Notes under the pieces: generated by a model
The model's database searches: none
What the model was told of the DNA's origin: nothing
Seen by the model: the letters and a program-made list of their open reading frames with translations, nothing else
Assembly: GCA_054661495.1 (NCBI GenBank)
Contig: BAAFSQ010000038.1
Coordinates: forward strand, 1 to 32,000
DNA: 32,000 nucleotides
Source of the DNA: Zygophlyctis sp. KS116
Taxonomy: Eukaryota; Fungi; Chytridiomycota
Direction: 5' to 3'
Program-made: the position numbers and the translations under genes
Shown here: piece after piece, positions 13,168 through 31,543 of the stretch
Numbering within the stretch: position 1 is the first letter of the stretch
How the letters are laid out: the number at the start of each line of letters is the position of its first letter

Positions 13168-14239
13168 TTAAGCTACCAAAAGTTTATTGGCAGTTTTCTT
13201 CACATATTGCTTTTCAGCTGGAATACCCAAAGGCGCAGTGTTGAAAATGAGAGTGAGAGGGATTTTGGCAAATATGTGGGATACGAAGTATAAAAACTCC
13301 CCTTGTGCAAAAGAGATAAATTCAAAGCGGACCAACGCATGAACTAATGCAACTAATTTTAAGATCAATGAATTTCTTACAACCATGCCATGAATATGCA
13401 CTAATTGTTTGAGAAAGCTCCATCAACGACTCATTTACGGGACAGTCATTTTCTCCAGTAATTGCCTTCTTATACATATCCCATATCACCTGAACAGCAA
13501 TGCTATGGGTACCATAAGCTAATAAGAGCATCCATTGAGAAACTGGTCCTTTTGTAATGGATCCAATCAATCCAAAGATTGTTAAAAGCCATGAGTTCAA
13601 AACGGCTCGCTCAATCATTGGTGATTCTACTTGAGAAACAAAACCAATAATGCAAGAAAGACTTTCCATATCAAAGAACCATTCAACATATCTGCACAAA
13701 TCTACAGGGTAACCCATTTCATCTCTCAAATATGGCGTCAGTTCAAAGTAATGCATGACATAAACACCCATTACAGCGAAATTCATGAGAGTAGTGGCTT
13801 TGGTAACAGCAGCCTTTGAGGGGTTATTTGATCCTATATAGGAGAACAAACTGAATACGGTAACCAAAAAGAATGTAAAAATTCCAAGTTGGTACACTTG
13901 TGGAGCATATTCTCTTTCAAATCGGAATTTTTTGCCACTTGAAGAATATCCCAAAGCAGCAACTAATGCAGACACAGTAGACCTATTTAGTCAGAAGAAA
14001 ATGAAGTTTACCACAAGAGGAATGTGGTGACTCTGCCTTGAATAAACTTTGAGATCCCTTTCATAGCTCCAGTATTTGCTAATTGTTTAAAGTATAGATC
14101 ACTTACTATTTTCCTGCTCCCGATGTTTAGAGGTCGGACATTCACATTCATCACACTTTGATGTTATCTTTCCTGTCATAAATTCAGCACATTCACAGGA
14201 ATTGCAAGCTCCTCTAAAAACCTTTATATCGTCAATCAT
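13168..14239 (-). CDS. Microbial (type 1) rhodopsin, fungal RhGC/NeoR-like 8-TM module without an enzyme domain, 328 aa
   Basis: Exons 14239-14107, 14078-14012, 13982-13381, 13352-13168 (987 nt; introns 28/29/28 nt). Helix C GYPVDLCRYVEWFFDME; helix F SWHGFALVH; helix G HIFAKIPLTLIFN (K297). An extra TM0 (FLLWSTVSALVAALGY) follows an N-terminal Cys-rich segment. Confidence 0.9.
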
Positions 14240-15034: not shown

Positions 15035-18000
15035 ATGACCTTTTCTAGTGTGAGTGATGATGCTCTGAAAGACCCAAACACTTGTGTCAACAAAGCAACT
15101 AAGAAATTCACAGCCTTCAGATTTATTGCTGTGCTTGCGATTTTTACGCTTTTTATAGCGGCAATGAATTCATTATACGTATAACATATATAATTTCTAA
15201 CCATAGTATCAACAGATAAAGAATACAATTATGAATATATCATGTAATGCATCATTTTATTTATCGTAGTTGGTTGGAATGATCTATGCTCAGGACATGG
15301 TACAGTTATAAATAGTGACGCTTGTGTCTGTGACTCGGGGTATAATGGTCAATACTGTGATGAAATAGAAAATGGTATGGGTAAGATTGTCATTTTAATT
15401 ATTTAAAGTATTAAATGAAGTTGTTCCGTCGTCAGTTGCAATCTTTACTGATGCTTTTGGAACCCTAAATTCGTTTGATGTACTCTCATTATACTATGAA
15501 TCACTTGCTAAAAACCTACAAAAATCTGGACATGTAATAACAATAGTTTATACTGGCGATTCAAATTCTCAATTTACGAAAATTTCTGCCATGTATGAGA
15601 AGCAAGGAATTAGAGTGATTAAGTAATTAGTTTTATATGACAATAATAGGCTCGAATTTGAACCGACTGTAGAAAAAAAATCAATTTCTGCTTATAATTA
15701 TCTGCGATCATTGAATAGTGGGTTTTCGACAGTTATCTTTTCTAGTTCTTCACATACTGGATTTTATACCCTCAACTCTGTTAATCAGAGACTTTTCAAT
15801 GCAAATACCAAATTTGTTCTGAGTTTAGATGATCTGTCAGAGAAAGATATCGAATCACTGCAAAATTCTGAAAAAAGTCATACTGTAACAGATATTTCTG
15901 TATTGAAGAAGCATTTTATGACCCAAAAATCAATTCAGTTGGCGGTAAGATCTTTTTATATTTATTTTAGAATCAAGTTATATCTCCTACTGAGTCGCTA
16001 ATATCGTTTTATAATGTAAAGGCACCAGCTCAAGTTTTGCATCACGCCTCCTTAATTGAAACTTCTTCAAATATTGCATTTAACAATTTCAAGTCATTCA
16101 AGGAAATAGTTTTTATCGGAGGTAGAAATAACATGGATGGAATTGCTATTTTCTGTGATTCAATCGATGAAATGATCATCACACATTCAGAAGTTTTATT
16201 TGAAAAGAAGATAACTTTCTTTTTGTTTGACAGGGATATAAACGGATTGAGATCTATGGATTATATTGGGTTACGTGCTTCCAGCTGGGAAACAGCAAAT
16301 GTCGAATGGGTTATAAACATCGACCGCGATTACCAGGAAATGGTTCAATATTTTGATAACGCTGACAGCAATCGTATTGCAGTTATACCTGCGATTTTTG
16401 GTGGCGCCGCAATTATTAAGGAGGAGTTCAAGAGTTCTGGAATTCAAATGATAACATTGGAAGATTCGATCGGCTTTGATGCTTTCAACATGAAGCAAGC
16501 ACTTATAAGTCGATTTTTAAAAGAAGGTATTTTAAAAGTGTTATTTAATTTTAGAGACACCTACTAATAATCAAATAACAGACTATTTGCAGCGCTCGAT
16601 AATATTTTGGGATGAATTTGACTCGACAGAGATAAAAACATTACCGGAAGTTAATGCTGATACCCCCCTTGTTTCAGTGATTCTTGTTCATCACAATAGG
16701 CCTGAATTGCTCAAGCAGGCAATTTCTTCCTTGGAAAAGCAGACCTACACCAACTTTGAAGTTGTTCTTGTTGATGATGGAAGTACAGATGCTGCTGCTG
16801 TAGCGTATTTGGACGAGTTATCCTGGAAATGGTGGGAAGAAAAAGGATGGAAAGTCATCCGTGAACCTAACCGATACTTGGGCGCTTCAAGAAATACTGG
16901 TGTCAAACACGCTAACGGAAAGTATGTCTTGTTTATGGATGATGATGATTATGCCAAGCCTCATCAGATCGAGACTTTTGTAAAGGTCGCTTTGGCTACC
17001 AAAGCACCGGTTATGACATCCGGGCATGATGTTTTCAATGGCAGATCTCCTCCATCTGGAAGATCATCTTTGAGATACACTCCTATTGGTGGTGATGTTT
17101 TATCAGGAATGCTAGAAAATGTTTTTGGAGATTCTGCCATGTTTATTGAAAGAGAATACTTTATTGAAAGTGGAGGTTTCACCGAAGAATTTGGCGTTGG
17201 ATTCGAAGATTATGAATACCTGGCAAAAGTTGCACTACGAGGAGATAGAATGGAAGCTATTGCTGAGCCACTCCATTGGTATAGAATTCATCAGGGCACA
17301 ATGAGTGAATCAACGTATTTGAAAGCTAATCAGCTACGTGTTTTGAGGGCATACAGTTCCAACAAATATTCTGCTGATTCAGACCAGAAAAATTTATTGC
17401 TCCATGTTCGTGATACCTTTTTCCAAAAAGGGGAACTATTGAAGCGGGACGATATCAGTTCTTCTTTTTCATCTATATTTTCAAATGCTACTGACACTCA
17501 ATCGTCAGTCAGTCCTGATATTGATATTCCTTTAGTCCCTGAAGTTCCTAGTATTTCATCAACTTCAAGCTCTTCAGCCTTAACTAGTGTACCAACTTTG
17601 GACAAGTTGGACCCCAAATACTTTTTTAAAAGAGCGAAGGTTGTAGGAGTTAAGGTTGAAGGAGTAGTTGAAATCGAACGCCTTATTGTCATCACTGGCA
17701 GCAACTTCGGAAGCGATCCGATTTTGAATATTGAATCAACTAATGGAACAAAAAAATTAAATTTAACCAGTGGCAAGGGTTTTATTGTAAAACCTAATCG
17801 TCTTAACCCATCTCAAAATATCATTGTCATAAATCAAACCGTTTTTGAAAACTACAATGAACATCCAGACAAAGTTTTTCAATCTGATGCTTTTTTAGTG
17901 GATGCCTTTTTCCATGTATATAATACTATTGGAAGGTCTAGAAAAAGTTTGCAGCTCTACTATTCAAATCAAGAGAGTTATAAGACAGCGCAGCTTCAAT

Positions 18001-21000
18001 ATAAATATAACGGAAGCGATTTTTTAGCAAATCTCTGGTTAGAGCGTTTACCAGACACACAAACTCCTCTGTGTCTTTTGAAGGAAGAAACCGATCCTGG
18101 GCTAGGGCAAAATATCATACCAACAATTTACGATCGCCATTCTGGACAGTTGCTGTGTGCACCAGAGCAGAAGTTTTCAGGAAAAATTATTATGGGAATT
18201 TCTGCATCTCCAGTGCTTCATATAGATAATTCGACCCGTGTTAATGACTATTTAGCCATGATATCTCTTAACTCAGATCCTTTCATCTTTCAGTACCAAG
18301 ATTCCCCCCCAACTCTTTTGTCTGCTAAGTTTGACAATTCTGGAGCATTTGTAGCTGTATCTTTTGACAAGAGTATTATAATACGGGGAGAGGGAAAAAA
18401 CCTCCTAAATTGCACAGACTTGTTTATTAATCGCGCGGATCGAAAGTCTCCTAAGCTTTCGGTTTTAAAGGATGATTGCATAATTTCCAGGATTGATTCC
18501 AATACTATCAAACTAACATTTGCCGGTAAATTCTTGGCAGAAAACTCCTTACACGCCTTGAAAGCATTCGACCGTCTCTATCTTAAAAAGTTTATGGTTT
18601 ATAATTACAATAATCCAAAACCATTTACAGGACTAGGAGCTTCTGGATCAGTTATTGTGCAGCCTCTAAATATCGCTCCTGTACCATCGTTAAATCTTCA
18701 AAGTTCTCCTCTTGTCGGAGCATGCTCTGACCTGGTCCTCTTTTTCTCGGCAATGTCAGGCTCTGGAGGCAGACCTTTTATTTCAGTTTCAATTTCTGTT
18801 ACGCCAATGTTAGGCGGATATCTTGCTGTGTCAAGTGCAATCGAGCTAGAAAAAATACTCAATACTCAATCCAATGATATCTTGCTGGGCAAAATTTCAA
18901 AAATTGTTGTTGCTTCAGAAACCTTGTTAGAAACGAATGGCGGAAAAGGCTTTCATCCTGGAAAATATAATGTCTCGGTCACTCTGGTAAATGTTTGGGG
19001 AAAAATTGGAACAAGAAGCTACTCGTTCACTTTCATTCAAGACAAGACTTTACCAAATGTCTTATTTACAGGTCCAGGCGAGACAGGGGCTGATTCTCGC
19101 AAAGATAACTCAATATTTGCACAGATAACAATGAGCTCATCCGCAGCATGTTCTTCTATGCCGAAGCCGTCTTATAAATTCTCCTGGGTACTTTCTGGTT
19201 CTTTGAACCAGCCAATAACTTCAAAAGGTTCTTCCCTTTTAATTAAGCCATTTTCACTACAGCCTAGCGCTTCTTACTCAGCTTCTCTAGAGATTTTCGT
19301 ATATTTACCAGATGAAGTTAAAAATTACACATATAGTTATGATTTCGCTACTATGCAAGATTATTTCACTACTTCTTTAGGGAGCGATAAACAAATCGGT
19401 GTTTCTCAAAGCTTCAATTTGATTCCAGAAGTACGAAATGAATATTATAAGAAAATTAATTATACTATGTTCACCTTTACTTGGGCTTGTAACACGGCTG
19501 GCTCACCATGCCAAGATTCTAACGGCGCAAACTTGGTTTTGGATCAATTTGTTCAGAAGAATACGTTGCAGGGATATCCTTTCTTAAGAATTCCTGCAGA
19601 AAAGTTAAGCGTAGGAAAGTATGTCTTTCAGGTTAATGCGATCAATGAAATAACAAATACTGTCGGAAACCCTCAGTCTTCATCGATCGAGGTAGTGGAT
19701 AGAAAGGTTCCTGATGTCTTAATAACATCTAATGATATTCGACCTTCAACACAAAATCAGAGGTTTGAGATAAAGGCCTCAGTAGTACGCGAATCTGTTT
19801 CTAAAATAATTAATGTGGTATTTTTTTGGGCTAGTGAGCCCTCATGTGGTTCAAAAATATATCATGTAGCTTCTATGGATGATTCGGATCTCGTTACTTC
19901 AAGAAATTCATCCGTTCTCAAGTTCAAACGTAATGTCTTATCTCCCGGTTCATCATATTGTTTATCTTTAAACGTCACGGATAAGGCTACCCAGGCCTCT
20001 TCTATGTCCTTCTTTATTTTCTCAATGCGTAACCGTCCTTCTAGTGGCTTTTGTACTGCTGATAACAATGTAGATAATGTGATTAAACTGACGTCGTTCG
20101 TCGATGATTTATCATTCAATTGCGGATCTTGGATAACAGACGAAGAGTCATATCCTTTACTATATACCTTTGAACTCCAGAAAAAAGGATCGCTTAAGTG
20201 GGTAACAATTTCACGTAGCAGTCCTGATCCATCAATTCAAATGGCTATGACTGAAGGCGAATATACGGTCAGAGCGATAATTTCAGATTCATCGGGATCA
20301 AGTGCTAATAGTCCTGTTTCTTATCAAGTTAATGTTACACAACTAGATTTTGCCTCCTTTGGTTTGCGTAAAAGGAGCATATCAGATGTTTATTTCAAAT
20401 TCTTAGGAGGGTGGTTAGCTAATAAGTCAGAAATTTTCCAAAACACACAGAACATTAATGGAATTAGTTCAGCATTAAGTACAATATCTACACTATCATT
20501 TGATGCGGTGACTAATGCTTATCATCAAACTCTGCAAAGAATTGTGTTTGAAGCTACAAAATCTATGATTGATTCCGGTCTTTTGATAATGAATGAAGAT
20601 TCTGTCAGTTTCTTCGCCTCACAGATTCAGTTGTTCACTGGCACAAAATGTCTCATTCCGTTGGAAAATAGAGAACTTTCTTTAGATTTGCTGCAAGTCA
20701 TTCTTGAAGACGCGGATTCTACCACTTACGATATGCAGGAATCTCTTAAATCGGAAACTTTAGATAAAATTGTCGGGACTCTCACCAATCTCACATGCAC
20801 ATCAAGAGCTAATCTATTCGAAAATTTGCTTTCCAAGAGTAACACTTTAATTCAAAAGGTTGCTGCTATTTCGCTTCGTAGAGCTGGTTGTGGAGAGGTT
20901 GCTTATGACAGTAGTTACAGTGATCTTGCGATTCAAATAGGAAAGGGGGTCTCCTCAGAATATCTTGAATCTGAAGAAAGACAAGTCGGTAGTTTCACGG

Positions 21001-21689
21001 TAAAAATTGCAAATGAGCTTCTGGACTCATGCCCGTCATATATAACCGGCAAAAAAGGTGCCGAGGGTCTAAGAACGATAACAAAAAAGATAATTGATGA
21101 GTCTATTTATCAAATGTCTTATTTAAATGACTCAGGCAGCCCAAAATCATTGACAGGAGGAAATTCAGAAGTCAAATTTGAGATCTCCTCATCAAATGTT
21201 ACTCTGCTTGAATTGTATAATCCTGAATGTTCTTTTGTTAAATATCAAAATGACAAAGAAGATATCACAACCGCAGAATTGTCACAAGAAGGATGTATAA
21301 CAACTGGTATAGACATAAAAGGTAGTAAAATTACATGTATTTGTAATCACTTATCAGATTTTCTCATATCATTTTCTCCTCGTTATGTCAATGTATCAAG
21401 CCCAACTGCATCACCGAGTCCCGAGGGAACTGGCAATAATAACAACAATACAATTATCGCTGCAGCAGTTGGTGGAAGTATTGGTGCTATTCTTATTATT
21501 GGTGCTGCACTATATGTCGGATTGAAGGTTCTACCCAAACGATCAAAGTATTCACCAGGAGCAGAGAGTGAACCTCCTAGAAATGATCAGGTTATGATTG
21601 GTATTCCTTCACCCTCAAACGAAGCTCCATCTGATAATGATAAGAAGGAATTTTCTTCAGTGGATGTCAAAAATGCAGATTTCTCTTAA
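15035..21689 (+). CDS. Giant TM-EGF-GT-B(degenerate)-GT2-REJ-GAIN/GPS-TM protein, paralog 1 (~2163 aa)
   Basis: ATG 15035. Introns 15179-15206, 15244-15269, 15381-15408, 15623-15649, 15945-15970 and 16527-16554 give one open frame of 6492 nt. Signal anchor FIAVLAIFTLFIAAM; EGF CSGHG..CVCDSGYNGQYC; GT2 VLVDDGS, FMDDDD, GFEDYE; REJ-like F.WAC, PSSGFC..CGSW..YPLLYTF; GPS CSF..EGC..CICNHLSDF; C-terminal TM IIAAAVGGSIGAILIIGAALYVGL. Confidence 0.88.
16663..17314 (+). repeat. 652-bp block identical to 23403-24054 (GT2 catalytic domain)
   Basis: Line-by-line comparison at offset 6740 shows no mismatch from cccccctt gtttcagtg to atgagtgaatcaac. Confidence 0.95.
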
Positions 21690-21749
21690 AATTTTGGGTA
21701 AAATGATAAATAAAAAAACTTTATATCTTCAATCACTTGCAAGGATCCA

Positions 21750-21798
21750 TTACGTCATTATTAGCAAATCACGAATCGCGTATAATTCAAGACGCGTC
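21750..21798. promoter_or_regulatory. CRE-like TTACGTCA, TCGCGT and MCB ACGCGT upstream of paralog 2
   Basis: ttacgtca 21750-21757; tcgcgt 21776-21781; gacgcgtc 21791-21798; ATG at 21815. Confidence 0.55.
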
Positions 21799-21814
21799 CA
21801 AAGCTTCATTTAAA

Positions 21815-24800
21815 ATGAAGGAGAATGAGATTGGCGGCGAAAAGCAGCCATTACTTTCTGTTGATAAATGTGAATTAACAACGAAAGGCCGATCTAAGAA
21901 GATCACAACTCTATTATATATTATATTTATATTTGTCACCCTAGCCACGACTATCATATTATACCCACTTAAAAATGTAATCATCCATGTTTTTAATTAT
22001 TTAGACATTGCTAGCTTCTTATTATGAGCAGCGTAAGTTGATTTTATTGTTAATAAGTTAAGAGTCATGTTCCTCTAATGGAATTCTGCTGAATGATAAT
22101 TCATGCTTGTGCGATCTTGGATATACTGGTAAAAGTTGTGATCAACTTATTTCATCTGAAATGCCAAAAGATAAAACTATTGCTCTCTTTGTAGATGCAT
22201 TTGGGGATATAAATTCAAATTCGCCACTATCTCTCGGATATGAAGCTTTAGCTCTTCAATTATCACACGAGGGCTACGATGTGACTGTTGTCTACACAGG
22301 CATTAATACCAATGCATTTAGTGCAGTTGCCTCAAAATTTCTGGAGAAAAAGATTTCTCTTCAAAGGTACGTCAAGATACCATGATGAATTTTAGACTGC
22401 CAGAGTCAGGTGTCGAATTCCCCGAAAATATTTTAGAAAGAAGATCATTTGATGCATTTAAATTTCTTCAGAAAAATGATTTTTCAATTATTTATTTCAC
22501 TAGCAGTGCTGGAATAGGATATTATAGTATAAACTCTCATCAACAGGGACTGCTTGCGCCAAATTCAAAGTTTATTCTAGGAATGGATACTCTTCCATTA
22601 GCTTCTCGATTAAAAATTGAAAGTGATGTTGATGATTATCTAGTTATAGATATTCTTGCCTTGAAAGAAAAATTCATGATTGAAAAATCAATTGAAAATT
22701 CTGTAAGACAATTTCATTAATCTTCTCAGGATGCAGTTGTTACATTTAGAAAAAATTCGTTCAAACAACTCACTGCTGATGGTTTTGAGATTAAGGATTT
22801 TCAAAAGAAATTTTCTTTGCAAGAATTTCCATCCAGTGATTTTTTAGACTTCAAAAAAACTACCTTTAAGGCAAAAGAACTTGTTTTCATAGGAGAAATT
22901 TCAATTACCGGCGGAATCAAAGATTTTTGTGATGCTATTGATTCTATTCTTCAGTCTGGAATTGAATCTCCTTTTAAAATCACATTTATTGGTGGATTAG
23001 GAACTATTAATGGCCTCGATTCAAAGGAATATATACAATTGAGATCTTTAAAATGGGATTCACAAAATATTGAATGGGGTATTAAAGATGACATAAGCGT
23101 AAGAAATGCATTGAATTATGTTGGTACTGATGAGAGTGGTAGATTAGCGATCATACCCTCCCTTTCTGATTTCAGTTCAGTTGTTAAATCTAATTTTGAT
23201 GCCTTTGGTGCTCCATATGTTGAAAACAATCTTATTCAAAAAATTACTGATTCTTTAAATAAAGGAGGTAAAAAAATTAAACACTAAAATGTAGTTCGTT
23301 TTTCTAGTCAAACTAAGTTGGATCGATCTGTAAAATGGCCCGTATACCTGGAAAACATTTTTCGTAAAAGCGTACTCGTAGATGAGTTGATGATGAATAC
23401 TTCCCCCCTTGTTTCAGTGATTCTTGTTCATCACAATAGGCCTGAATTGCTCAAGCAGGCAATTTCTTCCTTGGAAAAGCAGACCTACACCAACTTTGAA
23501 GTTGTTCTTGTTGATGATGGAAGTACAGATGCTGCTGCTGTAGCGTATTTGGACGAGTTATCCTGGAAATGGTGGGAAGAAAAAGGATGGAAAGTCATCC
23601 GTGAACCTAACCGATACTTGGGCGCTTCAAGAAATACTGGTGTCAAACACGCTAACGGAAAGTATGTCTTGTTTATGGATGATGATGATTATGCCAAGCC
23701 TCATCAGATCGAGACTTTTGTAAAGGTCGCTTTGGCTACCAAAGCACCGGTTATGACATCCGGGCATGATGTTTTCAATGGCAGATCTCCTCCATCTGGA
23801 AGATCATCTTTGAGATACACTCCTATTGGTGGTGATGTTTTATCAGGAATGCTAGAAAATGTTTTTGGAGATTCTGCCATGTTTATTGAAAGAGAATACT
23901 TTATTGAAAGTGGAGGTTTCACCGAAGAATTTGGCGTTGGATTCGAAGATTATGAATACCTGGCAAAAGTTGCACTACGAGGAGATAGAATGGAAGCTAT
24001 TGCTGAGCCACTCCATTGGTATAGAATTCATCAGGGCACAATGAGTGAATCAACTCAATTGAAAGCTAATCAATTAAGAATGTTAAGATCTTACGTTGAA
24101 CATAACTGGATTTCAAATAATTATGCTAAACGGCTTTTAATGTTTGTTCAAAAGAAGTTTTTCGAAGAAAATGGCAATGAACCTTTTAAGAGAGATTTAG
24201 GATTTCTTAATGGTGATTTGGGCTTGCTTGTCAGCCTTGGATCTAATTCAACTGTTCCAGGTTCATTTCTGTTTGATGCCCCGGTTACACTGGCGAGTTG
24301 TAATGGTGATGCTTGTCCTAAAGTTGGATTACTGAATCCGAAGGTACTCGCCAATTATGAAAATACCACTTTCCTAATGGTTGGTCCAAAGTTGATAGAC
24401 GCAAAGTTTGAATTAGAGGATGTCGGCGAAGTTAAAGTTTCGCTGAAGAAACGAATTGATTCACAAGATTATATCCAACTTTTCTTGCCAAAAATTCGTT
24501 TTACATCATTGACCAAGACTTTTAGGCTACTTGTAACTGAAAATGGTGCTGCTACACTCAGAAAACGAAGCACAGCACCGTCTTCCAATGGTCATTCGAT
24601 ACCTGTCTCGAACAATCCTGCCGCGACAACAAACGATAGCAAAGTCGTAGTTGAAAATGTTCCTGCAGTTGTCGATATCAAGGATTCCTCTATTCCGTTC
24701 TATAGTGGAAGTATAACTCTATACAATCCAGAGATTACAAAAGTCGTTCTAACTGAATTTCAAGAAAAGATATTTATCAATAATGAAATCCAAATCAAGT

Positions 24801-27800
24801 TTTATGCTAAGAATTTGCTCCGAAAGAGTGGCACTATTATTCCGAAATGTTTGTACAAAATATCTACTGAAGGTCAACCTATCAGTTATAAACTAGCTGA
24901 TCCTGTGATGTATGATACAAATGCTGGTAGTGTTTTCTGTGGGCTCGCATTATCATACAGCGCTCTCGTGGAGGTTACAATAATTTTTTCACCGATCGTA
25001 TTTTTCCCTTCAAGCGCTTTGTTTGGTGAAATTATTCGTAATCCTTTCGATTATGGGATAAAGCAACTAACAGCTGTTCCTTCTATTCGTATTTTTGGTC
25101 CAGCCCCAAAAATGATATCTGCTGAATTGGATATTTCAACCTATTCGGTTAACGTAGGGTTTTCTTATCCTTTCGATATGGTTCAGACAATAGTCGATTC
25201 TGTTTCGAATTCAACAAAATACATCACACTTGGCTCTTCGACGTACTGTAACAAAGTTTTCAATGCTGCTCCATTTGGTATTTATGGATCTGGATTACTC
25301 TCTATAAAAGCGGAAGATTGCAAAGCCACAAAAGTAGGCAGTCGGACTCTAGTTTTAACTTTTTCAAGATCTTTTCTATTAGGGAACGGTCGATATGTAA
25401 TTCGCCCAGGAAACCGTTTGGTACAATTACCAAACTCCATAAAGTATTTTGGTGCATTTTTTTCAGAAATGTCTAACTCTAATATTAAAGTAACTGGTCC
25501 TTCTTTGGTCACTATTCCTTACATTTCAGGGACTATCGATGAAAAAGTCGGAATATGCAATAATTTACAGATTGATTTGCAATCTACAATGGCTAAAGCC
25601 GTGCTTCCTCTTAAAGAACTATCCATATCACTATCTCCAAAATCTGTAGGGCTCCTAAAAAGAAGTACAGCACCTTCCTCTAATGGTCAATCACCTTCAG
25701 TCCCTGCCGTTAACGCTGTAGCTGACCCATTGCCTTCAAGTAATGGTATTATTTCACCAACCGATAATTTAACTATTGATGATATAAATGTTGCGATTCA
25801 GAAACAAGCAGTACACATTATTGAAAATGGTGCTAAACCAGTCATTAGTATGCTAGCAAGTAAACTGAATGGGCTAGCTTTTGGATCTTATGATGTTCGC
25901 CTCACTGCCACAGACTTTCTTGGTGGAAAAAATGTCACTGTTCTATCATTCACCAGAACAAGCGATGTGATTCCAATACTTAGCGTATATGGTCCACCTG
26001 GAAATGCTCTTACCAATCAAGGAATTGTCATTTATTCAAAGGTTGAACAAGTAGATTCTTCAAACCCGAATTGTCTCATTCCTGGAAATTATCAATTTGA
26101 ATGGAAATTTTATGGAAAAACGAGCTCTAAAAAAATCCCATCAAGTAGTGTGTCCTCGCTCTCTATACCTCAATACTCATTGCTACCAAATGAAAAATAT
26201 TCTGTTTATGTTTCAGCAACCAGTGGATCCAAAAGTGTTTCCAAATGGTATAATTTTACAACTGCTTTAGACACTATTCAAGTTACCGCAGGATCAGCTC
26301 GCACTGTAGGTGTATCTCAGAGTTTAGTTTTGGAGCCAACAATCATTGATATCTCATACCGGCCAAATACTTTTACAAATTTTACATGTTTATGGACATG
26401 TTCATCAGCTTCCGGTATTTGCATGAATCTGAAAACGTCAAGTCCCATTGTTTTGACTTCCTGTAAATTAAATATCACTCGTAGTCTATCAATAGGGAAC
26501 TATGTTTTTGGTATCACAGTTACTAACGCAATTACAGGCGCTATTGGTGTATCGCGAAATGTATCGATTACAGTCCAGGGTACTTCATTACCTCTTTTTA
26601 CTGTCAATCCTTCCAAATTGATAACTTCAGCTCTAGATCCTGCCTTCCAAATAATCGTAAAAGTTGATAGCACTTCGGTTTCCTCGGTCAAAAATGTCCG
26701 GTATAATTGGCGCTCAGTGTCTGAATGCCTTTCAGGAGATTCATCCATTCCTGTTGACTTAACAAAAAGTGAAAATTTTGCAGTATTTCCCATTACTAAC
26801 ATTGTAAAATTTTCGCGAACTGGGCTGCAGGCAGGAGCCACATATTGTTTACAGGTTCAGATTGTTGATGGATCTATTCAAACCAATTATACTGAGGTGC
26901 AGTTCTCGGTCTTGAATAGACCATCTAATGGAGTTTGCGTTCCAAGTAGCTTTTCTGTTGCTGAATTTTCGACTCTGACCATATCATGCTCAGGCTGGAC
27001 CACAGATTTGCTCTCATATCCTCTTTTTTACAGTATCATGTTGAAAAAGTCAACCGAATCAATTTACCGTTTAGCTTCTTTAAATTCTCTAGATTCGTTT
27101 GTGGATTTGAAACTGGCAGAAGGTACTTATAATTTCAAAGTTTCTATAAATGATGCCTTTAAAGCTGTACCGGATGATTTTTCGATCCCAAGATTTAATA
27201 TTACTGTGCAAAGATCTACATCTTATGCAGCTGCGGTGGGCTTGGCACAATCACTTCTCACTTCTGGTAAAACCGATCTATTAAAAAATGGAGATGTATC
27301 AGGTTACATATCTACACTTTCTGCCATTGCGGAGATCGGATTTGGAAATATACTATCTGACGCTGGTGCTCAAAGTCTTCAAAAAGATTTTATTTCTAAT
27401 CTTGATTTCCTTACTGATTCTGGCTTCGTTGCATTAGATGATGAAGGAACCGCTATGATAGCCTCAAAATTAGGATCTGCGATAGGTGATCAATGTGCCA
27501 TCCCTGATTCAAACTCTGCTGCAGCATCAAATACTTTGTTCAAGCTCATGAACAAGGCAAAGATTAGTACGGCTAGCAATGGTGGCGGCTTGACTGCGAA
27601 CAGTTTGGATAGTTTAGTGGGATCTTTGGACAATTTACTATGTACCGCATCAGATAGCTCCTCGCATAGAGATGCTGTTTCCCAAAACTTGAATAGTTTT
27701 GTATTTAATGTTGCCCAAAGCGCCCTTGGAACTGCGGTTTGTGGGGAAGTAGCCTATTCTACTAGTAGGGATAGTTTTTCGATTTCAGCTGGTGTTGGAG

Positions 27801-28591
27801 TTGAAGATGCTTCTTCTTTCGGATCTTTTTCATTTCCAGTTTTAGATACTACGTCTTTGGCTCCTGGTGGTTGCCCTCCTTATGTTATGGGAACCAAAAA
27901 GTCAAACATATTCTCTAAATTGAACTCTGCCATTTCATTGAAAAGTAAGATTAACCAGATGTCTTTCTTGAAGGAATCCACATTTGAAAAAGCAAATCCT
28001 AGTTCAGCTGAAGTAGAATTTACAATCGATGTACAAAATGGTACCATTCCTATCTGCTCTTGGATCAAATATTCAGATTCAACAGATAATATCAAAGATG
28101 CATCTGTTTCAAGTGATGGCTGTAAAGTTAAGAGCACAGCTCAGAATGGAAATACACTAAGTGTTACTTGTCAATGTTCTCATTTGACTGATTTTGTTGT
28201 AGCAGCCAATCTCGTAATTTCTGGTGCACAACCAACGTCACCTGAAACCTCTCCAACCTCTCCAACCCCTCAAACTACGAATACTGCTGCCTCTTCAAGT
28301 TCTAGTTTGGGCGCTGGAGCTATCGCAGGAATAGTAATTGGATCTCTTTTATTGATTGGTCTGATTGTAGGCGGTGTCATACTACGCTCAAGACGCCGTC
28401 CCTCCCCATATAGAGTTCCAACAGTGAGTGGTGTAGAAAAGGGAGAAATGCCAGCACTGTCACCTACTCCAAAAAAGTCTCAGGAAGCTGGGGATTCTGA
28501 TGTAGAATCTGGGAAAGATGAAGCTCCAAAGGTAGAAAAACAGAAGAAGGAGAAAAAGCAGAAGAAAAAGAAGAAGAAATCACAAAAGTAG
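21815..28591 (+). CDS. Giant TM-EGF-GT-B(degenerate)-GT2-REJ-GAIN/GPS-TM protein, paralog 2 (~2211 aa)
   Basis: ATG 21815. Introns 21977-22004, 22033-22062, 22367-22395, 22703-22729 and 23268-23294 give 6636 nt in frame. TM LLYIIFIFVTLATTIILY; EGF CSSNG..CLCDLGYTGKSC; same GT2 as paralog 1; REJ-like PSNGVC..CSGW..YPLFYSI; GPS CSW..DGC..CQCSHLTDF; TM GAIAGIVIGSLLLIGLIVGGVIL; polybasic tail. Confidence 0.88.
23403..24054 (+). repeat. Second copy of the 652-bp identical GT2 block
   Basis: Identical to 16663-17314. Confidence 0.95.
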
Positions 28592-28600
28592 TTTTTTCAA

Positions 28601-29318
28601 TTAATAAAACTGCTGTCCTTGTATTCTTTGGGCTAGTTCCTTTGAGAGTTTATCCTTTGAAATTTGGTCCAAATCATAAACCTGGTATTAAATAATGATG
28701 ACATACCGATGTAATAAATCGAATGAGACTTTCTGGTGGCACTTCCAACTTTGACCTTTGGCCCCATGTATAGAGAGGAGATTCGAAATCTGGGGATGTT
28801 TCTTTTTCCAAGTAATTTTGCTTGACCATGACTCCTAGGTATGCACTTAAAGATGAAGCCGGAATGGATTCATCATTTAAATAAGTGTCATCAATATGAA
28901 GATCACTTAGAATACTTAACAGCGTATCGTGAGTTATAGAATGATTACTTCCAAAGATTATTACAAGAATAATCATATGCAAAACATCCCTTGGATCTGT
29001 CTTCAAGAGAGATTTATCTAAAAGCGTCGAAATCATTATCCATGTTTTCTTCTCAGTCACAGTCAATAATCGCATACTAAAGACCCGCTCCAAGTATTCA
29101 TTCGCCCTATTGAATATAACTGCAAAGGCCTTTGTATGACCACCAGCTATTCTAATGAGTAATTGACGGATACCTTTCTTTGTCAAGTCTTCTTTCCGTA
29201 TCAGCGCCTTTCTTGTGAGGCAAAAGAGTGCGAATCTCACCATTGATGAGACGGCTTTATCCATTTCAAATTCTGACATTGAATCAGCTGCTCTTACTGC
29301 CGCTGCGTCAGATTCCAT
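28601..29318 (-). CDS. NSE3: MAGE-domain SMC5/6 subunit NSE3
   Basis: MVRFALF..IRKEDL..F..AN..LE.VF.M.L, ..VKQNYL..YTWGQRSKLE. Probable introns 29147-29173 (27 nt, in frame) and 28682-28706 (25 nt); TAA at 28601-28603. Confidence 0.85.
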
Positions 29319-29332
29319 ATAATTTATTACTA

Positions 29333-31543
29333 TTAACGTAAACTAGCAAACGACCCTAACAATTGATTCTTTTTCCTCTTGTCCTTGTTAGAATATGTCG
29401 ATAAATGAGTGTCATCAGCTTCCGCCTTGTTATGCAAAGTAAGCGAATTCCCAGATCCAGGAGTTTTACCCTTGTATTTCTCTAATAGGCTGGCAGTTGT
29501 ATGGATAGATTTTCTATCATAATATGTATCTGTGCATTATTATTTTTAAGAATTACCTTCTCTAGATGGTTCATTATTGAAAGCTCTGGGGTTCCGGTTC
29601 ACTCGTCTTTCTTCCATTTTTCGAGCTTTAGATTTAGTTATCATTTATTACCTTGATCGATAATTGCTTTTCCTTCTTCCACATCTGGATGATCATTTGT
29701 AAGAACCGCATATTCCTTAAGCCGCAGCAAAACTAAAATTCGATTGTGAAGGTGGAACAGAAATATGAATGATATAATGAAAATAGAGTAAGGTAGCCAA
29801 TCATTATAACTGTCACCGAAAAGAGGTGTTAGTTTTACTGCTGGACCTAGGTACTTAAAGTCGATATTTTCAAAAGTACCTGAATAAATGTTGGGAATCC
29901 TGAATTAACTTTTTCGGCAGGAACATCTGCCAAATTTATCATGTTTAAGAAGTTATAACATAGGGGAAATGTTAGACGGCTATAAAATTACGAACGAATA
30001 ATTACCACAGGTATCCTCCAACAAATAGTAGTGTAGGTTCGTCTGTATGATGCTCTGGAACCATTTGATAGAAATCCAAAATTTTAATTTTAAAAAGAGT
30101 TGAATATGTACAGATACACATGTACAATATAAAAGCCATGGAAATCATCTAAACATTAAAGAAAAAAAAGCACTTCAACTACAAACGGGCTGTCAATATT
30201 TTGAATAATTAATCCAGGAATCGAAAGGGAAATTGAAGTAATTTGAAAAGTACTTTCTGACCAAACCAGAATTATTGATGCCATCGCACAAATGCTACCG
30301 AGAAAATATAAAAAAGTAGGTTTAATCCAAATATAATACCACCAATCTATATTTAAGCCAAAATAATAGTCATTACATGCTTTTGACTGATGCTCTTTAT
30401 ACTTTCCTTCTGGGATGACAAAAAATAGTGATTGTAACTTTCTTTAAAGTTAGAAATATTAAAGAAATATGTACCTCTCACTACTTTTTTCATTTTCGAT
30501 TAGATCCTGGAAAAAAAAGGCACGCTGTAATAGAAACTGAAATCTCCTAAAGTATTAAATCATAAATCATACGCCTTATCCCGTTCAAAAGCATATAGTG
30601 CTCGTTTAAGCTTTGCATTCAATACCACCAAATAATTTTGAGTAATAATAGCTGGGACATCTTCAGCATCTGAATCTGAAGCTGTTCTTTCTTGTAATGC
30701 TAAAGGACATTTTTCCAAAAGCTTGTCAATTATTTTCCTAAAATGTTCTTCTTCTAAAGGTATCCTTCTTGAAGCTATCGCCAATTGCCTTGCAACATCA
30801 TATAACTCTGCTTCTGAATCTACAGTAGCCTCTTTTAATTTTGGGACTTTTGTTTCTAAAAGTCTTAAATGACGCCTTGGAGTTGCAGTATTAAAAATTG
30901 ATCTGGGAACTTCTACAATCCCATATCCCAACATAAACATTACCAAGAAAAGTCCATAAGAATTAGCAGCAGCAACACCAACACCAATTAATGATTCTCT
31001 AAAATTAATTAGCCTTATTCCTAATTACGCTTTTATATGTGATACAACAACTGCATAAAATATAAATACAGCCCCAACAGCCCCTAGTATAGCATAAAAT
31101 ATTAAGTTTTCCCTTATTGATGCCCAAAGTCTTCTCCAAAAAGTAAATTCACCTGATCTAAAATTAACAATATCCAGTTAATACCTGGTATAGCTTGACA
31201 TGATTGGAATCACAAACCAAGTTAAATTAAAAGATGTCCAATACACTATTTCCCAAAATATCGTTAAAAATCCCGTTGGAACATAACCAAGTGGCTCCTC
31301 ACATTGAATATTACCAGCAACACATTTATCAAATCTTGACTTTTGAAATTAATAATACTAAATTACCGATGTCAGATCCAGCGGTAGAATAAAAATGATT
31401 GTAAAAGGAAATAACCAAGCAATGAAGCAAGTTATTTGAACATACCAAGGAAATGTTTTTCTATTTCCATAATATAGTAGAACATTAGTAGCTACAGTTG
31501 CAAGCAATGTAAGAATAATGCTGAATACAATATAGTTTGTCAT
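29333..31543 (-). CDS. LMBRD2: LMBR1-family membrane protein (LMBRD2-like)
   Basis: W..PF..IFILPLDL, W.IVYWTSFNLTW..IP, RENLIFY, NSYGL..GYGIVEVPR, HHTDEPTLLFVG. At least 9 tiny introns, e.g. 31340-31366, 31158-31184, 30999-31028, 30547-30572, 30442-30474, 30347-30376, 30149-30173, 29980-30005. Stop at 29333-29335. Confidence 0.88.

Follow-up and report, generated by a model that had tools for sequence, protein, structure and literature searches.

A tandem pair of chytrid genes predicted to join a GT4-GT2 glycosyltransferase cassette to a polycystin-1-type PKD-REJ-GAIN stalk

Two adjacent plus-strand genes, here called A and B, in a 32,000-nucleotide stretch of the chytrid Zygophlyctis sp. KS116 (contig BAAFSQ010000038.1, positions 1 to 32,000; hereafter the window) raise the question of what a glycosyltransferase would do at the far end of a stalk built from REJ and GAIN/GPS domains, and whether one polypeptide carries both. 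A first, sequence-only reading had described the pair as glycosyltransferase-polycystin chimeras, and the start and end that it gave to the locus, 15035 and 28591, proved exact. On the basis of sequence comparison, A and B are paralogues of an uncharacterised, widespread eukaryotic family that combines an EGF-like module, a bacterial-type GT4+GT2 cassette and a polycystin-1-type stalk. In both proteins the order is an N-terminal hydrophobic segment, EGF-like module, GT4-like GT-B domain, GT2 domain, Ig/PKD-like sandwiches, REJ, GAIN/GPS, a stalk rich in serine, threonine and proline (S/T/P), one transmembrane segment and a cytosolic tail. This string of domains had been proposed from the letters of the window, and it is borne out by Pfam, by family profiles and by AlphaFold2 (AF2) models searched with Foldseek.

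The bulk of each gene is a long open reading frame (ORF) on the plus strand, 16587-21689 in A (1700 amino acids, aa) and 23318-28591 in B (1757 aa), preceded on its 5' side by short open frames that encode the hydrophobic segment, the EGF-like module and about 400 aa without a Pfam match. Each of the 11 frame breaks in the two genes has one and only one GT..AG stretch (26-30 nt) that bridges it, and joining the exons produces complete ORFs with zero internal stops in A and in B. The exons were searched singly against Pfam, and the joined frames were checked for frame and hydropathy with a local script. Five introns have the same position and phase in A and B, as the sequence-only reading had noted, and the extra one in A lies after the EGF exon. 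Spliceosomal introns of 26-30 nt are very small for a fungus-like genome. Their donors begin with GTA[AT] in 10 of the 11 cases and with GTACG in the remaining one; TAG is the usual acceptor, beside AAG and CAG, and a pyrimidine tract is absent. The stop of A and the start of B are 125 nt apart (21690-21814), a gap that has to accommodate the promoter and 5' untranslated region of B as well as the 3' end of A.

The continuity of the protein across these introns is supported by homologues. P0002, a 2210-aa protein read from an uninterrupted ORF of a public assembly (6730-bp contig L001), is 56% identical to A and aligns in order with every upstream frame of A and then with the long ORF. The site of intron 6 of A is also occupied by an intron in B and in the genomic contig L002 of a relative (29 nt, GT..AG), and is free of an intron in L001. 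In the transcript-derived homologues P0041 and P0097, GT4, GT2 and REJ are found within single ORFs marked complete, and P0041 additionally has a GPS match.

The GT2 domain is the best-conserved part of the protein, with 87% identity to P0002 (about 52% for the rest) and 43-64% identity to chytrid, dictyostelid and bacterial relatives. Its motifs DDGSTD, DDDD and FEDYEY align with those of GalT1 (5hea) and of the chondroitin polymerase K4CP, which are also its relatives in the PDB (7e-16 and 1e-13, respectively). A search of the genome (12.7 Mb) located GT2 domains of this type only in the tandem pair. The domain is followed in A and B by a lineage-specific stretch of about 275-295 aa, which has no meaningful Pfam match in either gene.

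The GT-B domain in front of it gives no Pfam or NCBIfam match, neither from the exons of A and B nor from P0002. Its assignment runs through P0002, to which the GT-B exons of A and B align at 45-60% identity and whose residues 90-485 match bacterial GT4 enzymes at about 1e-24 over both Rossmann halves. The family member of Cavenderia has direct GT4/GT1 matches in Pfam (PF13439, 1.5e-11; PF00534, 3.8e-8), and its GT-B domain is 37% identical to a bacterial GT4 (P0094) that immediately precedes a GT2. Since the match is to a GT4 directly before a GT2, the cassette is homologous to its bacterial counterpart as one unit, in agreement with the bacterial type that had been suggested for it. The D/E-x7-E motif of GT4 is retained in the dictyostelid and bacterial members. 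In A, the first Glu of this EX7E motif is replaced by Gly and the Gly-rich donor loop (GG-IPE) is lost; in B, the second Glu is replaced by Asn, about 30 residues are deleted after the motif and the Gly-rich loop is lost as well. As judged from these motifs, the GT-B half is degenerate in A and B and the GT2 is intact. The earlier label of a GT-B-like domain thus stands as homology to GT4, and needs qualification for the hallmark residues missing from both copies and the deletion in B.

Comparison of the two proteins revealed a strikingly uneven divergence. Identity is 89% in the GT2 domain (265 aa) and about 25% in the other roughly 1270 columns (one high-scoring segment pair of 1272 columns, E 4e-82), so that A and B are old paralogues carrying one recently homogenised domain. 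Inside GT2, positions 16663-17314 of A and 23403-24054 of B form a run of 652 bp in which every base is identical. This run, in paralogues whose proteins elsewhere share about 25% of their residues, is a recent gene-conversion tract. In the GT2 tree, P0001 (the A-type orthologue on L002) and P0002 cluster with A, not B. The proposal that the architecture predates the duplication is in line with these data, which support an old duplication.

Downstream of the cassette, the Ig/PKD-like region extends over about 400 aa and is conserved across chytrids. Its family profile (A2) matches the PKD domains of KIAA0319L at 9e-6, and its AF2 model is a string of Ig/FN3-like sandwiches for which Foldseek retrieves multi-Ig/FN3 chains as best matches. 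The next domain is recognised as REJ by Pfam in A (81 bits); the homologous region of B has no Pfam REJ match of its own. Two further REJ matches are present in the same genome, at G000:C316:8192-8611 (minus strand) and G000:C96:31870-32238 (plus strand); the open frames that hold them, 1431 and 783 aa long, contain no GT2 of the A/B type.

The GAIN domain is supported by profile and by model. The family profile (A1, 20 sequences) matches solved GAIN chains of adhesion G-protein-coupled receptors (GPCRs) at 1.5e-16, and the AF2 model of A (mean predicted local distance difference test, pLDDT, 84.6) shows seven helices followed by a beta sandwich. The best Foldseek matches of this model are the GAIN domains of BAI3 (4dlo, 5e-9), CELSR1 and latrophilin (to 3e-7), and those in the ESM Atlas are adhesion-GPCR clusters throughout, with TM-scores by query of 0.49-0.67. 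An ESM Atlas search by features gave no usable match, and a homologue search limited to the REJ-GAIN region returned the two closest relatives and nothing else. Residues C300, C322, C336, C338, H340 and L341 are invariant in all 20 aligned GAIN sequences, and the GPS motif CxCxHL[ST]xF is retained in 22 homologues, from chytrids through dictyostelids. Cleavage is predicted between Leu 21351-21353 and Ser 21354-21356 in A (CICNHL/SDF, the slash marking the cut) and between Leu 28184-28186 and Thr 28187-28189 in B (CQCSHL/TDF), at a turn linking the two final strands of the model (333-338 and 343-350). Examination of the C-terminal half for REJ and GAIN, which the sequence-only reading had named as a check on itself, thus gave both domains, with an intact GPS.

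A short S/T/P-rich stalk leads from the GPS to the transmembrane segment in both proteins. The tails behind it are short, poorly conserved and without a recognised domain. A lysine-rich run at the end of the B tail does not match the classical KKXX/KXKXX endoplasmic reticulum (ER) retrieval pattern, and nothing similar is seen in the tail of A. The basic residues flanking both termini put the roughly 2000 aa between them in the lumen or outside the cell, a placement proposed earlier; this part contains 14-19 N-glycosylation sequons and 20-24 Cys. The N-terminal hydrophobic segment of A may be a signal anchor or an uncleaved signal peptide. In chytrid members this first segment lies 20-58 residues in, and this position suggests a signal anchor. 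In dictyostelid and other amoebozoan members it occupies residues 1-10, in addition to a C-terminal transmembrane segment, and these appear to be type I proteins because a segment at that position resembles a cleaved signal peptide. The terms 'Golgi-type' and 'anchored at both ends' were not borne out by this comparison, given the signal-peptide pattern of the amoebozoan members; for the lineage of A and B, the hydrophobic segments make both possible.

The combination is not private to this genome. The GT4/GT1-GT2-REJ-GPS string is present in more than 20 chytrid gene models, including those of Chytriomyces, Dinochytrium, Phlyctochytrium, Cladochytrium, Entophlyctis, Podochytrium, Irineochytrium, Quaeritorhiza and Nowakowskiella, as well as in Gonapodya, in Amphiamblys and in several transcriptome-derived ORFs marked complete. 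It is also found in every major dictyostelid group, as a single copy and with TIG and PKD domains detected too. The family is thus conserved across two eukaryotic supergroups. Its public members are labelled hypothetical, GAIN-B, GPS or IPT/TIG domain-containing. The public eukaryotic proteins P0132-P0136 (about 1170-1230 aa) consist of a signal peptide, EGF, GT4, GT2 and a C-terminal transmembrane segment, without REJ or GPS. They likely represent the ancestral form of the enzyme half, and the existence of such short forms makes the stalk look like a module inserted between the enzyme and the C-terminal anchor. In the GT2 tree (computed with FastTree only), the sequences of Holomycota, dictyostelids and bacteria fall into three distinct groups with good support, and the nearest named neighbour of the A/B clade is Quaeritorhiza. 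This three-way split would fit one or two transfers from bacteria alike. The bacterial homologues of the cassette are polysaccharide glycosyltransferases labelled O-antigen or cell-wall biosynthesis.

A full-text search of the literature for glycosyltransferase, Dictyostelium or Chytridiomycota together with REJ, GAIN or GPS returned no description of the fusion, and a search on REJ/polycystin in chytrids and fungi had nothing on it, its sole promising item concerning an unrelated lectin domain. Araç et al. 2012 (PMC3321182) list at least one GAIN domain in the Dictyostelium discoideum genome (gi66815909), without mention of an enzyme; that protein is probably the D. discoideum orthologue of the family. 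What is new here is therefore a fusion undescribed in the searched literature, and what is known are all of its domains and its sequences, already public in many genomes. The earlier statement that no described protein combines these domains holds for the literature and fails for the public protein sets of chytrids, Gonapodya, Amphiamblys and dictyostelids.

Taken together, these observations lead us to favour, with moderate confidence, a membrane-tethered luminal GT2 enzyme on a self-cleaving PKD-REJ-GAIN stalk, with the GT-B domain as scaffold, for the assembly of coat, wall or matrix glycans. The GT2 is predicted to be an active enzyme in the lumen of the ER, the Golgi or vesicles, where it is placed because nucleotide sugars are available there. 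It would add or extend a beta-linked sugar on a glycan that is secreted or displayed at the surface, with the protein's own stalk as a possible carrier, and the GT-B half would serve in the A/B lineage as a scaffold only. Upon the predicted self-cleavage of GAIN, the enzyme-bearing ectodomain would remain non-covalently on a small transmembrane stub; at the surface it could then be retained, released or passed on. A likely role would be in the assembly of the cell coat, cyst wall or matrix glycan.

Several points weigh against this reading. With the GT-B domain degenerate, the ancestral two-enzyme logic may not apply in A and B, and a catalytic domain on the outside of the cell would find no nucleotide-sugar donor. 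In A, the Trp that usually follows the first Cys of the GPS is missing, and GAIN domains with an HL/T site do not always cleave. As for RNA, lake metatranscriptome contigs of at least 99% identity fall on the long exon of A, and a 275-nt contig of the metatranscriptome run X23 (16474-16748) carries intron 6 of A unspliced. No spliced junction of A or B was seen among these short contigs, and hence the splicing of both genes rests on homology and splice-site logic. The RNA check of the splice models proposed with the first reading did not confirm splicing; the support for a single gene comes from homologues such as P0002, which is continuous over all exons.

The same RNA data would be expected if the gene models were an artefact, with the transmembrane, EGF and GT-B exons belonging to another gene upstream and each long ORF being translated alone. 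The unspliced contig may stem from carried-over DNA, which is common in metatranscriptomes, from precursor RNA or from a retained intron. In an unspliced reading, no Met precedes the GT2 core of the long ORF; the bridging of every frame break by a single short GT..AG stretch, and the uninterrupted run of P0002 and of the transcript-derived homologues over the junction, also argue against an artefact, which we regard as extremely improbable. Another reading is that of a precursor, in which cleavage at the GPS, and perhaps at dibasic sites too, parts a glycosyltransferase fragment from a REJ-GAIN surface protein. It would make sense of the intact HL/S and HL/T sites, but the GPS cut comes after the whole ectodomain and would by itself leave enzyme and stalk together. 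As the maintenance of the fusion in Amoebozoa and Holomycota moreover argues for a joint function, we think a processed precursor decidedly unlikely.

Two further readings turn the protein into a receptor. The GT-like head could be non-catalytic and serve adhesion or sensing at the cell surface by binding polysaccharide of a host, a substrate or the matrix, in the manner of polycystin-1, which bears lectin and WSC modules. The hallmark residues lost from the GT-B domain of A and B, the adhesion-type character of the remaining ectodomain (EGF, Ig/PKD, REJ, GAIN) and the fact that nucleotide sugars are not expected outside cells are consistent with this. A glycan-binding head is nevertheless unlikely in view of a GT2 that has all catalytic motifs and is by far the most conserved part, and of the D/E-x7-E motif kept in the GT4 of dictyostelid members. 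Alternatively, removal of the ectodomain might uncover a tethered peptide able to activate a partner in the membrane, as in a polycystin- or adhesion-GPCR-like signalling receptor. The GAIN fold, with its cleavage site just ahead of the last strand, would suit such a mechanism, yet a single transmembrane segment follows the GPS, there is no 7TM, 11TM or PLAT part, and the tails are short, poorly conserved and devoid of recognised domains. We consider a signalling receptor very improbable.

GAIN/GPS and REJ domains have been studied almost solely on animal adhesion GPCRs and polycystins, and the reason for the self-cleavage is still debated. An enzyme-on-stalk family with one transmembrane segment in fungi and amoebae offers a much simpler system in which to ask what GAIN cleavage is for. 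The family also provides a candidate enzyme for the surface and coat glycans of zoosporic fungi and dictyostelids, and documents the incorporation of a bacterial-type GT4-GT2 cassette in a eukaryotic surface protein. A bolder idea, which we put forward as a conjecture with little chance of being right, is that the PKD-REJ-GAIN unit arose first as a self-cleaving, force- or ligand-releasable tether of a secretory glycan synthase and came to be used in channels and GPCRs later. In zoosporic fungi and social amoebae, GAIN cleavage would then set the time and place at which a coat or wall glycan is formed or laid down, for example at encystment or spore formation, with the enzyme fragment handed to the matrix.

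The neighbourhood adds to the history of the pair. In the window (23318-30946), genes for MAGE and LMBR1 follow gene B. On the relative's contig (L002:428-7989), the A-type orthologue P0001 is directly followed by MAGE and LMBR1 on the opposite strand; L002 ends 427 nt upstream of the long exon. Since MAGE and LMBR1 come directly after P0001 there and after B here, the difference reflects either an insertion of B between A and MAGE or its loss in the relative. An ORF on the minus strand (13322-13975) has a Bac_rhodopsin match of 1.6e-6, and the remaining genes nearby are of ordinary eukaryotic kinds (ribosomal L4, an EF-Tu-like GTPase, ankyrin, MAGE, LMBR1). The coordinates of all features are collected in Table 1.

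Table 1. Features of genes A and B in the window, with positions, strand and supporting evidence.
Feature	Positions	Strand	Evidence and remarks
Gene A	15035..21689	+	2163 aa, 7 exons, 6 introns; frame check without internal stops; exon-by-exon match to P0002
Gene A exons	15035-15178, 15207-15243, 15270-15380, 15409-15622, 15650-15944, 15971-16526, 16555-21689	+	Introns 26-28 nt long, all GT..AG
A N-terminal hydrophobic segment, aa 25-43	15107..15163	+	Kyte-Doolittle 2.23; basic KATKK precedes
A EGF-like module, four Cys	15281..15364	+	PF23106 EGF_Teneurin 2e-8; PF07974 1.4e-5
A GT-B (GT4-like), exons 4-6, degenerate	15409..16526	+	Homology via P0002 to bacterial GT4; motif alignment
A GT2 (GT-A fold)	16662..17456	+	PF00535 2.5e-28, 99.5 bits against a cut-off of 23.3
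A tandem Ig/FN3/PKD-like beta-sandwiches	18279..19466	+	Family profile A2; AF2 pLDDT 83.6; Foldseek
A REJ	19458..20333	+	PF02010 7.8e-23, 81 bits against a cut-off of 25; same place in own-genome search
A GAIN + GPS	20331..21404	+	Profile A1, AF2 model, Foldseek, ESM Atlas
A C-terminal transmembrane segment, aa 2086-2104	21453..21509	+	Kyte-Doolittle 2.28; 59-aa cytosolic tail 21510-21686
Gene B	21815..28591	+	2211 aa, 6 exons, 5 introns; frame check; upstream exons homologous to P0002 and P0010
Gene B exons	21815-21976, 22005-22032, 22063-22366, 22396-22702, 22730-23267, 23295-28591	+	Introns 27-30 nt long, all GT..AG
B N-terminal hydrophobic segment, aa 30-48	21902..21958	+	Kyte-Doolittle 2.38; basic residues precede
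B EGF-like module	22065..22145	+	PF23106 EGF_Teneurin 6.1e-7
B GT-B (GT4-like), more degenerate than that of A	22146..23267	+	Motif alignment; homology of exons to P0002
B GT2	23402..24196	+	PF00535 2.5e-28; 652-bp identity with A
B Ig/PKD-like region	25085..26377	+	Homologous to A 18279-19466 (alignment A2; BLASTP A vs B)
B REJ-homologous region	26333..27202	+	25% identity to A within the 1272-column segment pair, E 4e-82
B GAIN/GPS	27164..28237	+	PF01825 1.7e-4, 22.5 bits, just reaching the cut-off; second row in profile A1
B C-terminal transmembrane segment, aa 2125-2143	28328..28384	+	Kyte-Doolittle 2.7; 68-aa cytosolic tail 28385-28588

Among known systems, the polycystin-1 family (PKD1, PKDREJ, suREJ) resembles A and B in the order of PKD/Ig-like, REJ and GAIN/GPS domains, with an HL/T or HL/S site directly before the membrane; suREJ1 has a single transmembrane segment and an EGF module. 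A and B differ by being without lectin or LRR modules and by the GT4+GT2 cassette at the far end, which to our knowledge no described polycystin-1 family member carries. Pfam and the single hydrophobic segment after the GPS reveal no PLAT, PKD_channel or 11-TM part in either protein. The GAIN domains of adhesion GPCRs (latrophilin 4dlq, BAI3 4dlo, CELSR1 8vy2) have the same fold, four Cys and HL/S or HL/T in the last turn. Their identity to those of A and B is 12-15%, and A does not have the first conserved Trp; A and B have one transmembrane segment instead of seven, with no 7TM domain (PF00002) found after GAIN by Pfam.

For the enzyme half, the bacterial GT4-GT2(-TPR) enzymes of Verrucomicrobiota and relatives are homologous over both domains, with GT4 directly followed by a GT2 that is 43-50% identical to that of A and B. 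Unlike A and B, they are cytoplasmic, carry TPR or further glycosyltransferase domains, are without EGF, REJ, GAIN and transmembrane parts, and form a separate clade in the GT2 tree. The best solved relatives of the GT2 domain are K4CP (2z86), heparosan synthase (8vh7) and GalT1 (5hea), whose nucleotide-binding and DxD motifs align with it. The bifunctional glycosaminoglycan polymerases show a polymerase logic with two catalytic domains; about 100-120 residues align with K4CP, 8vh7 and 5hea, and the partner domain in A and B is a degenerate GT4, not a GT2 or GT45. KIAA0319-like/AAVR is a single-pass surface protein whose PKD domains match the middle region of A and B (9e-6), and it is without enzyme, REJ or GAIN. 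Finally, a type II Golgi glycosyltransferase is held in the membrane solely by an uncleaved N-terminal signal anchor, behind a short cytosolic tail; A and B have an N-terminal hydrophobic segment after basic residues and a C-terminal transmembrane segment.

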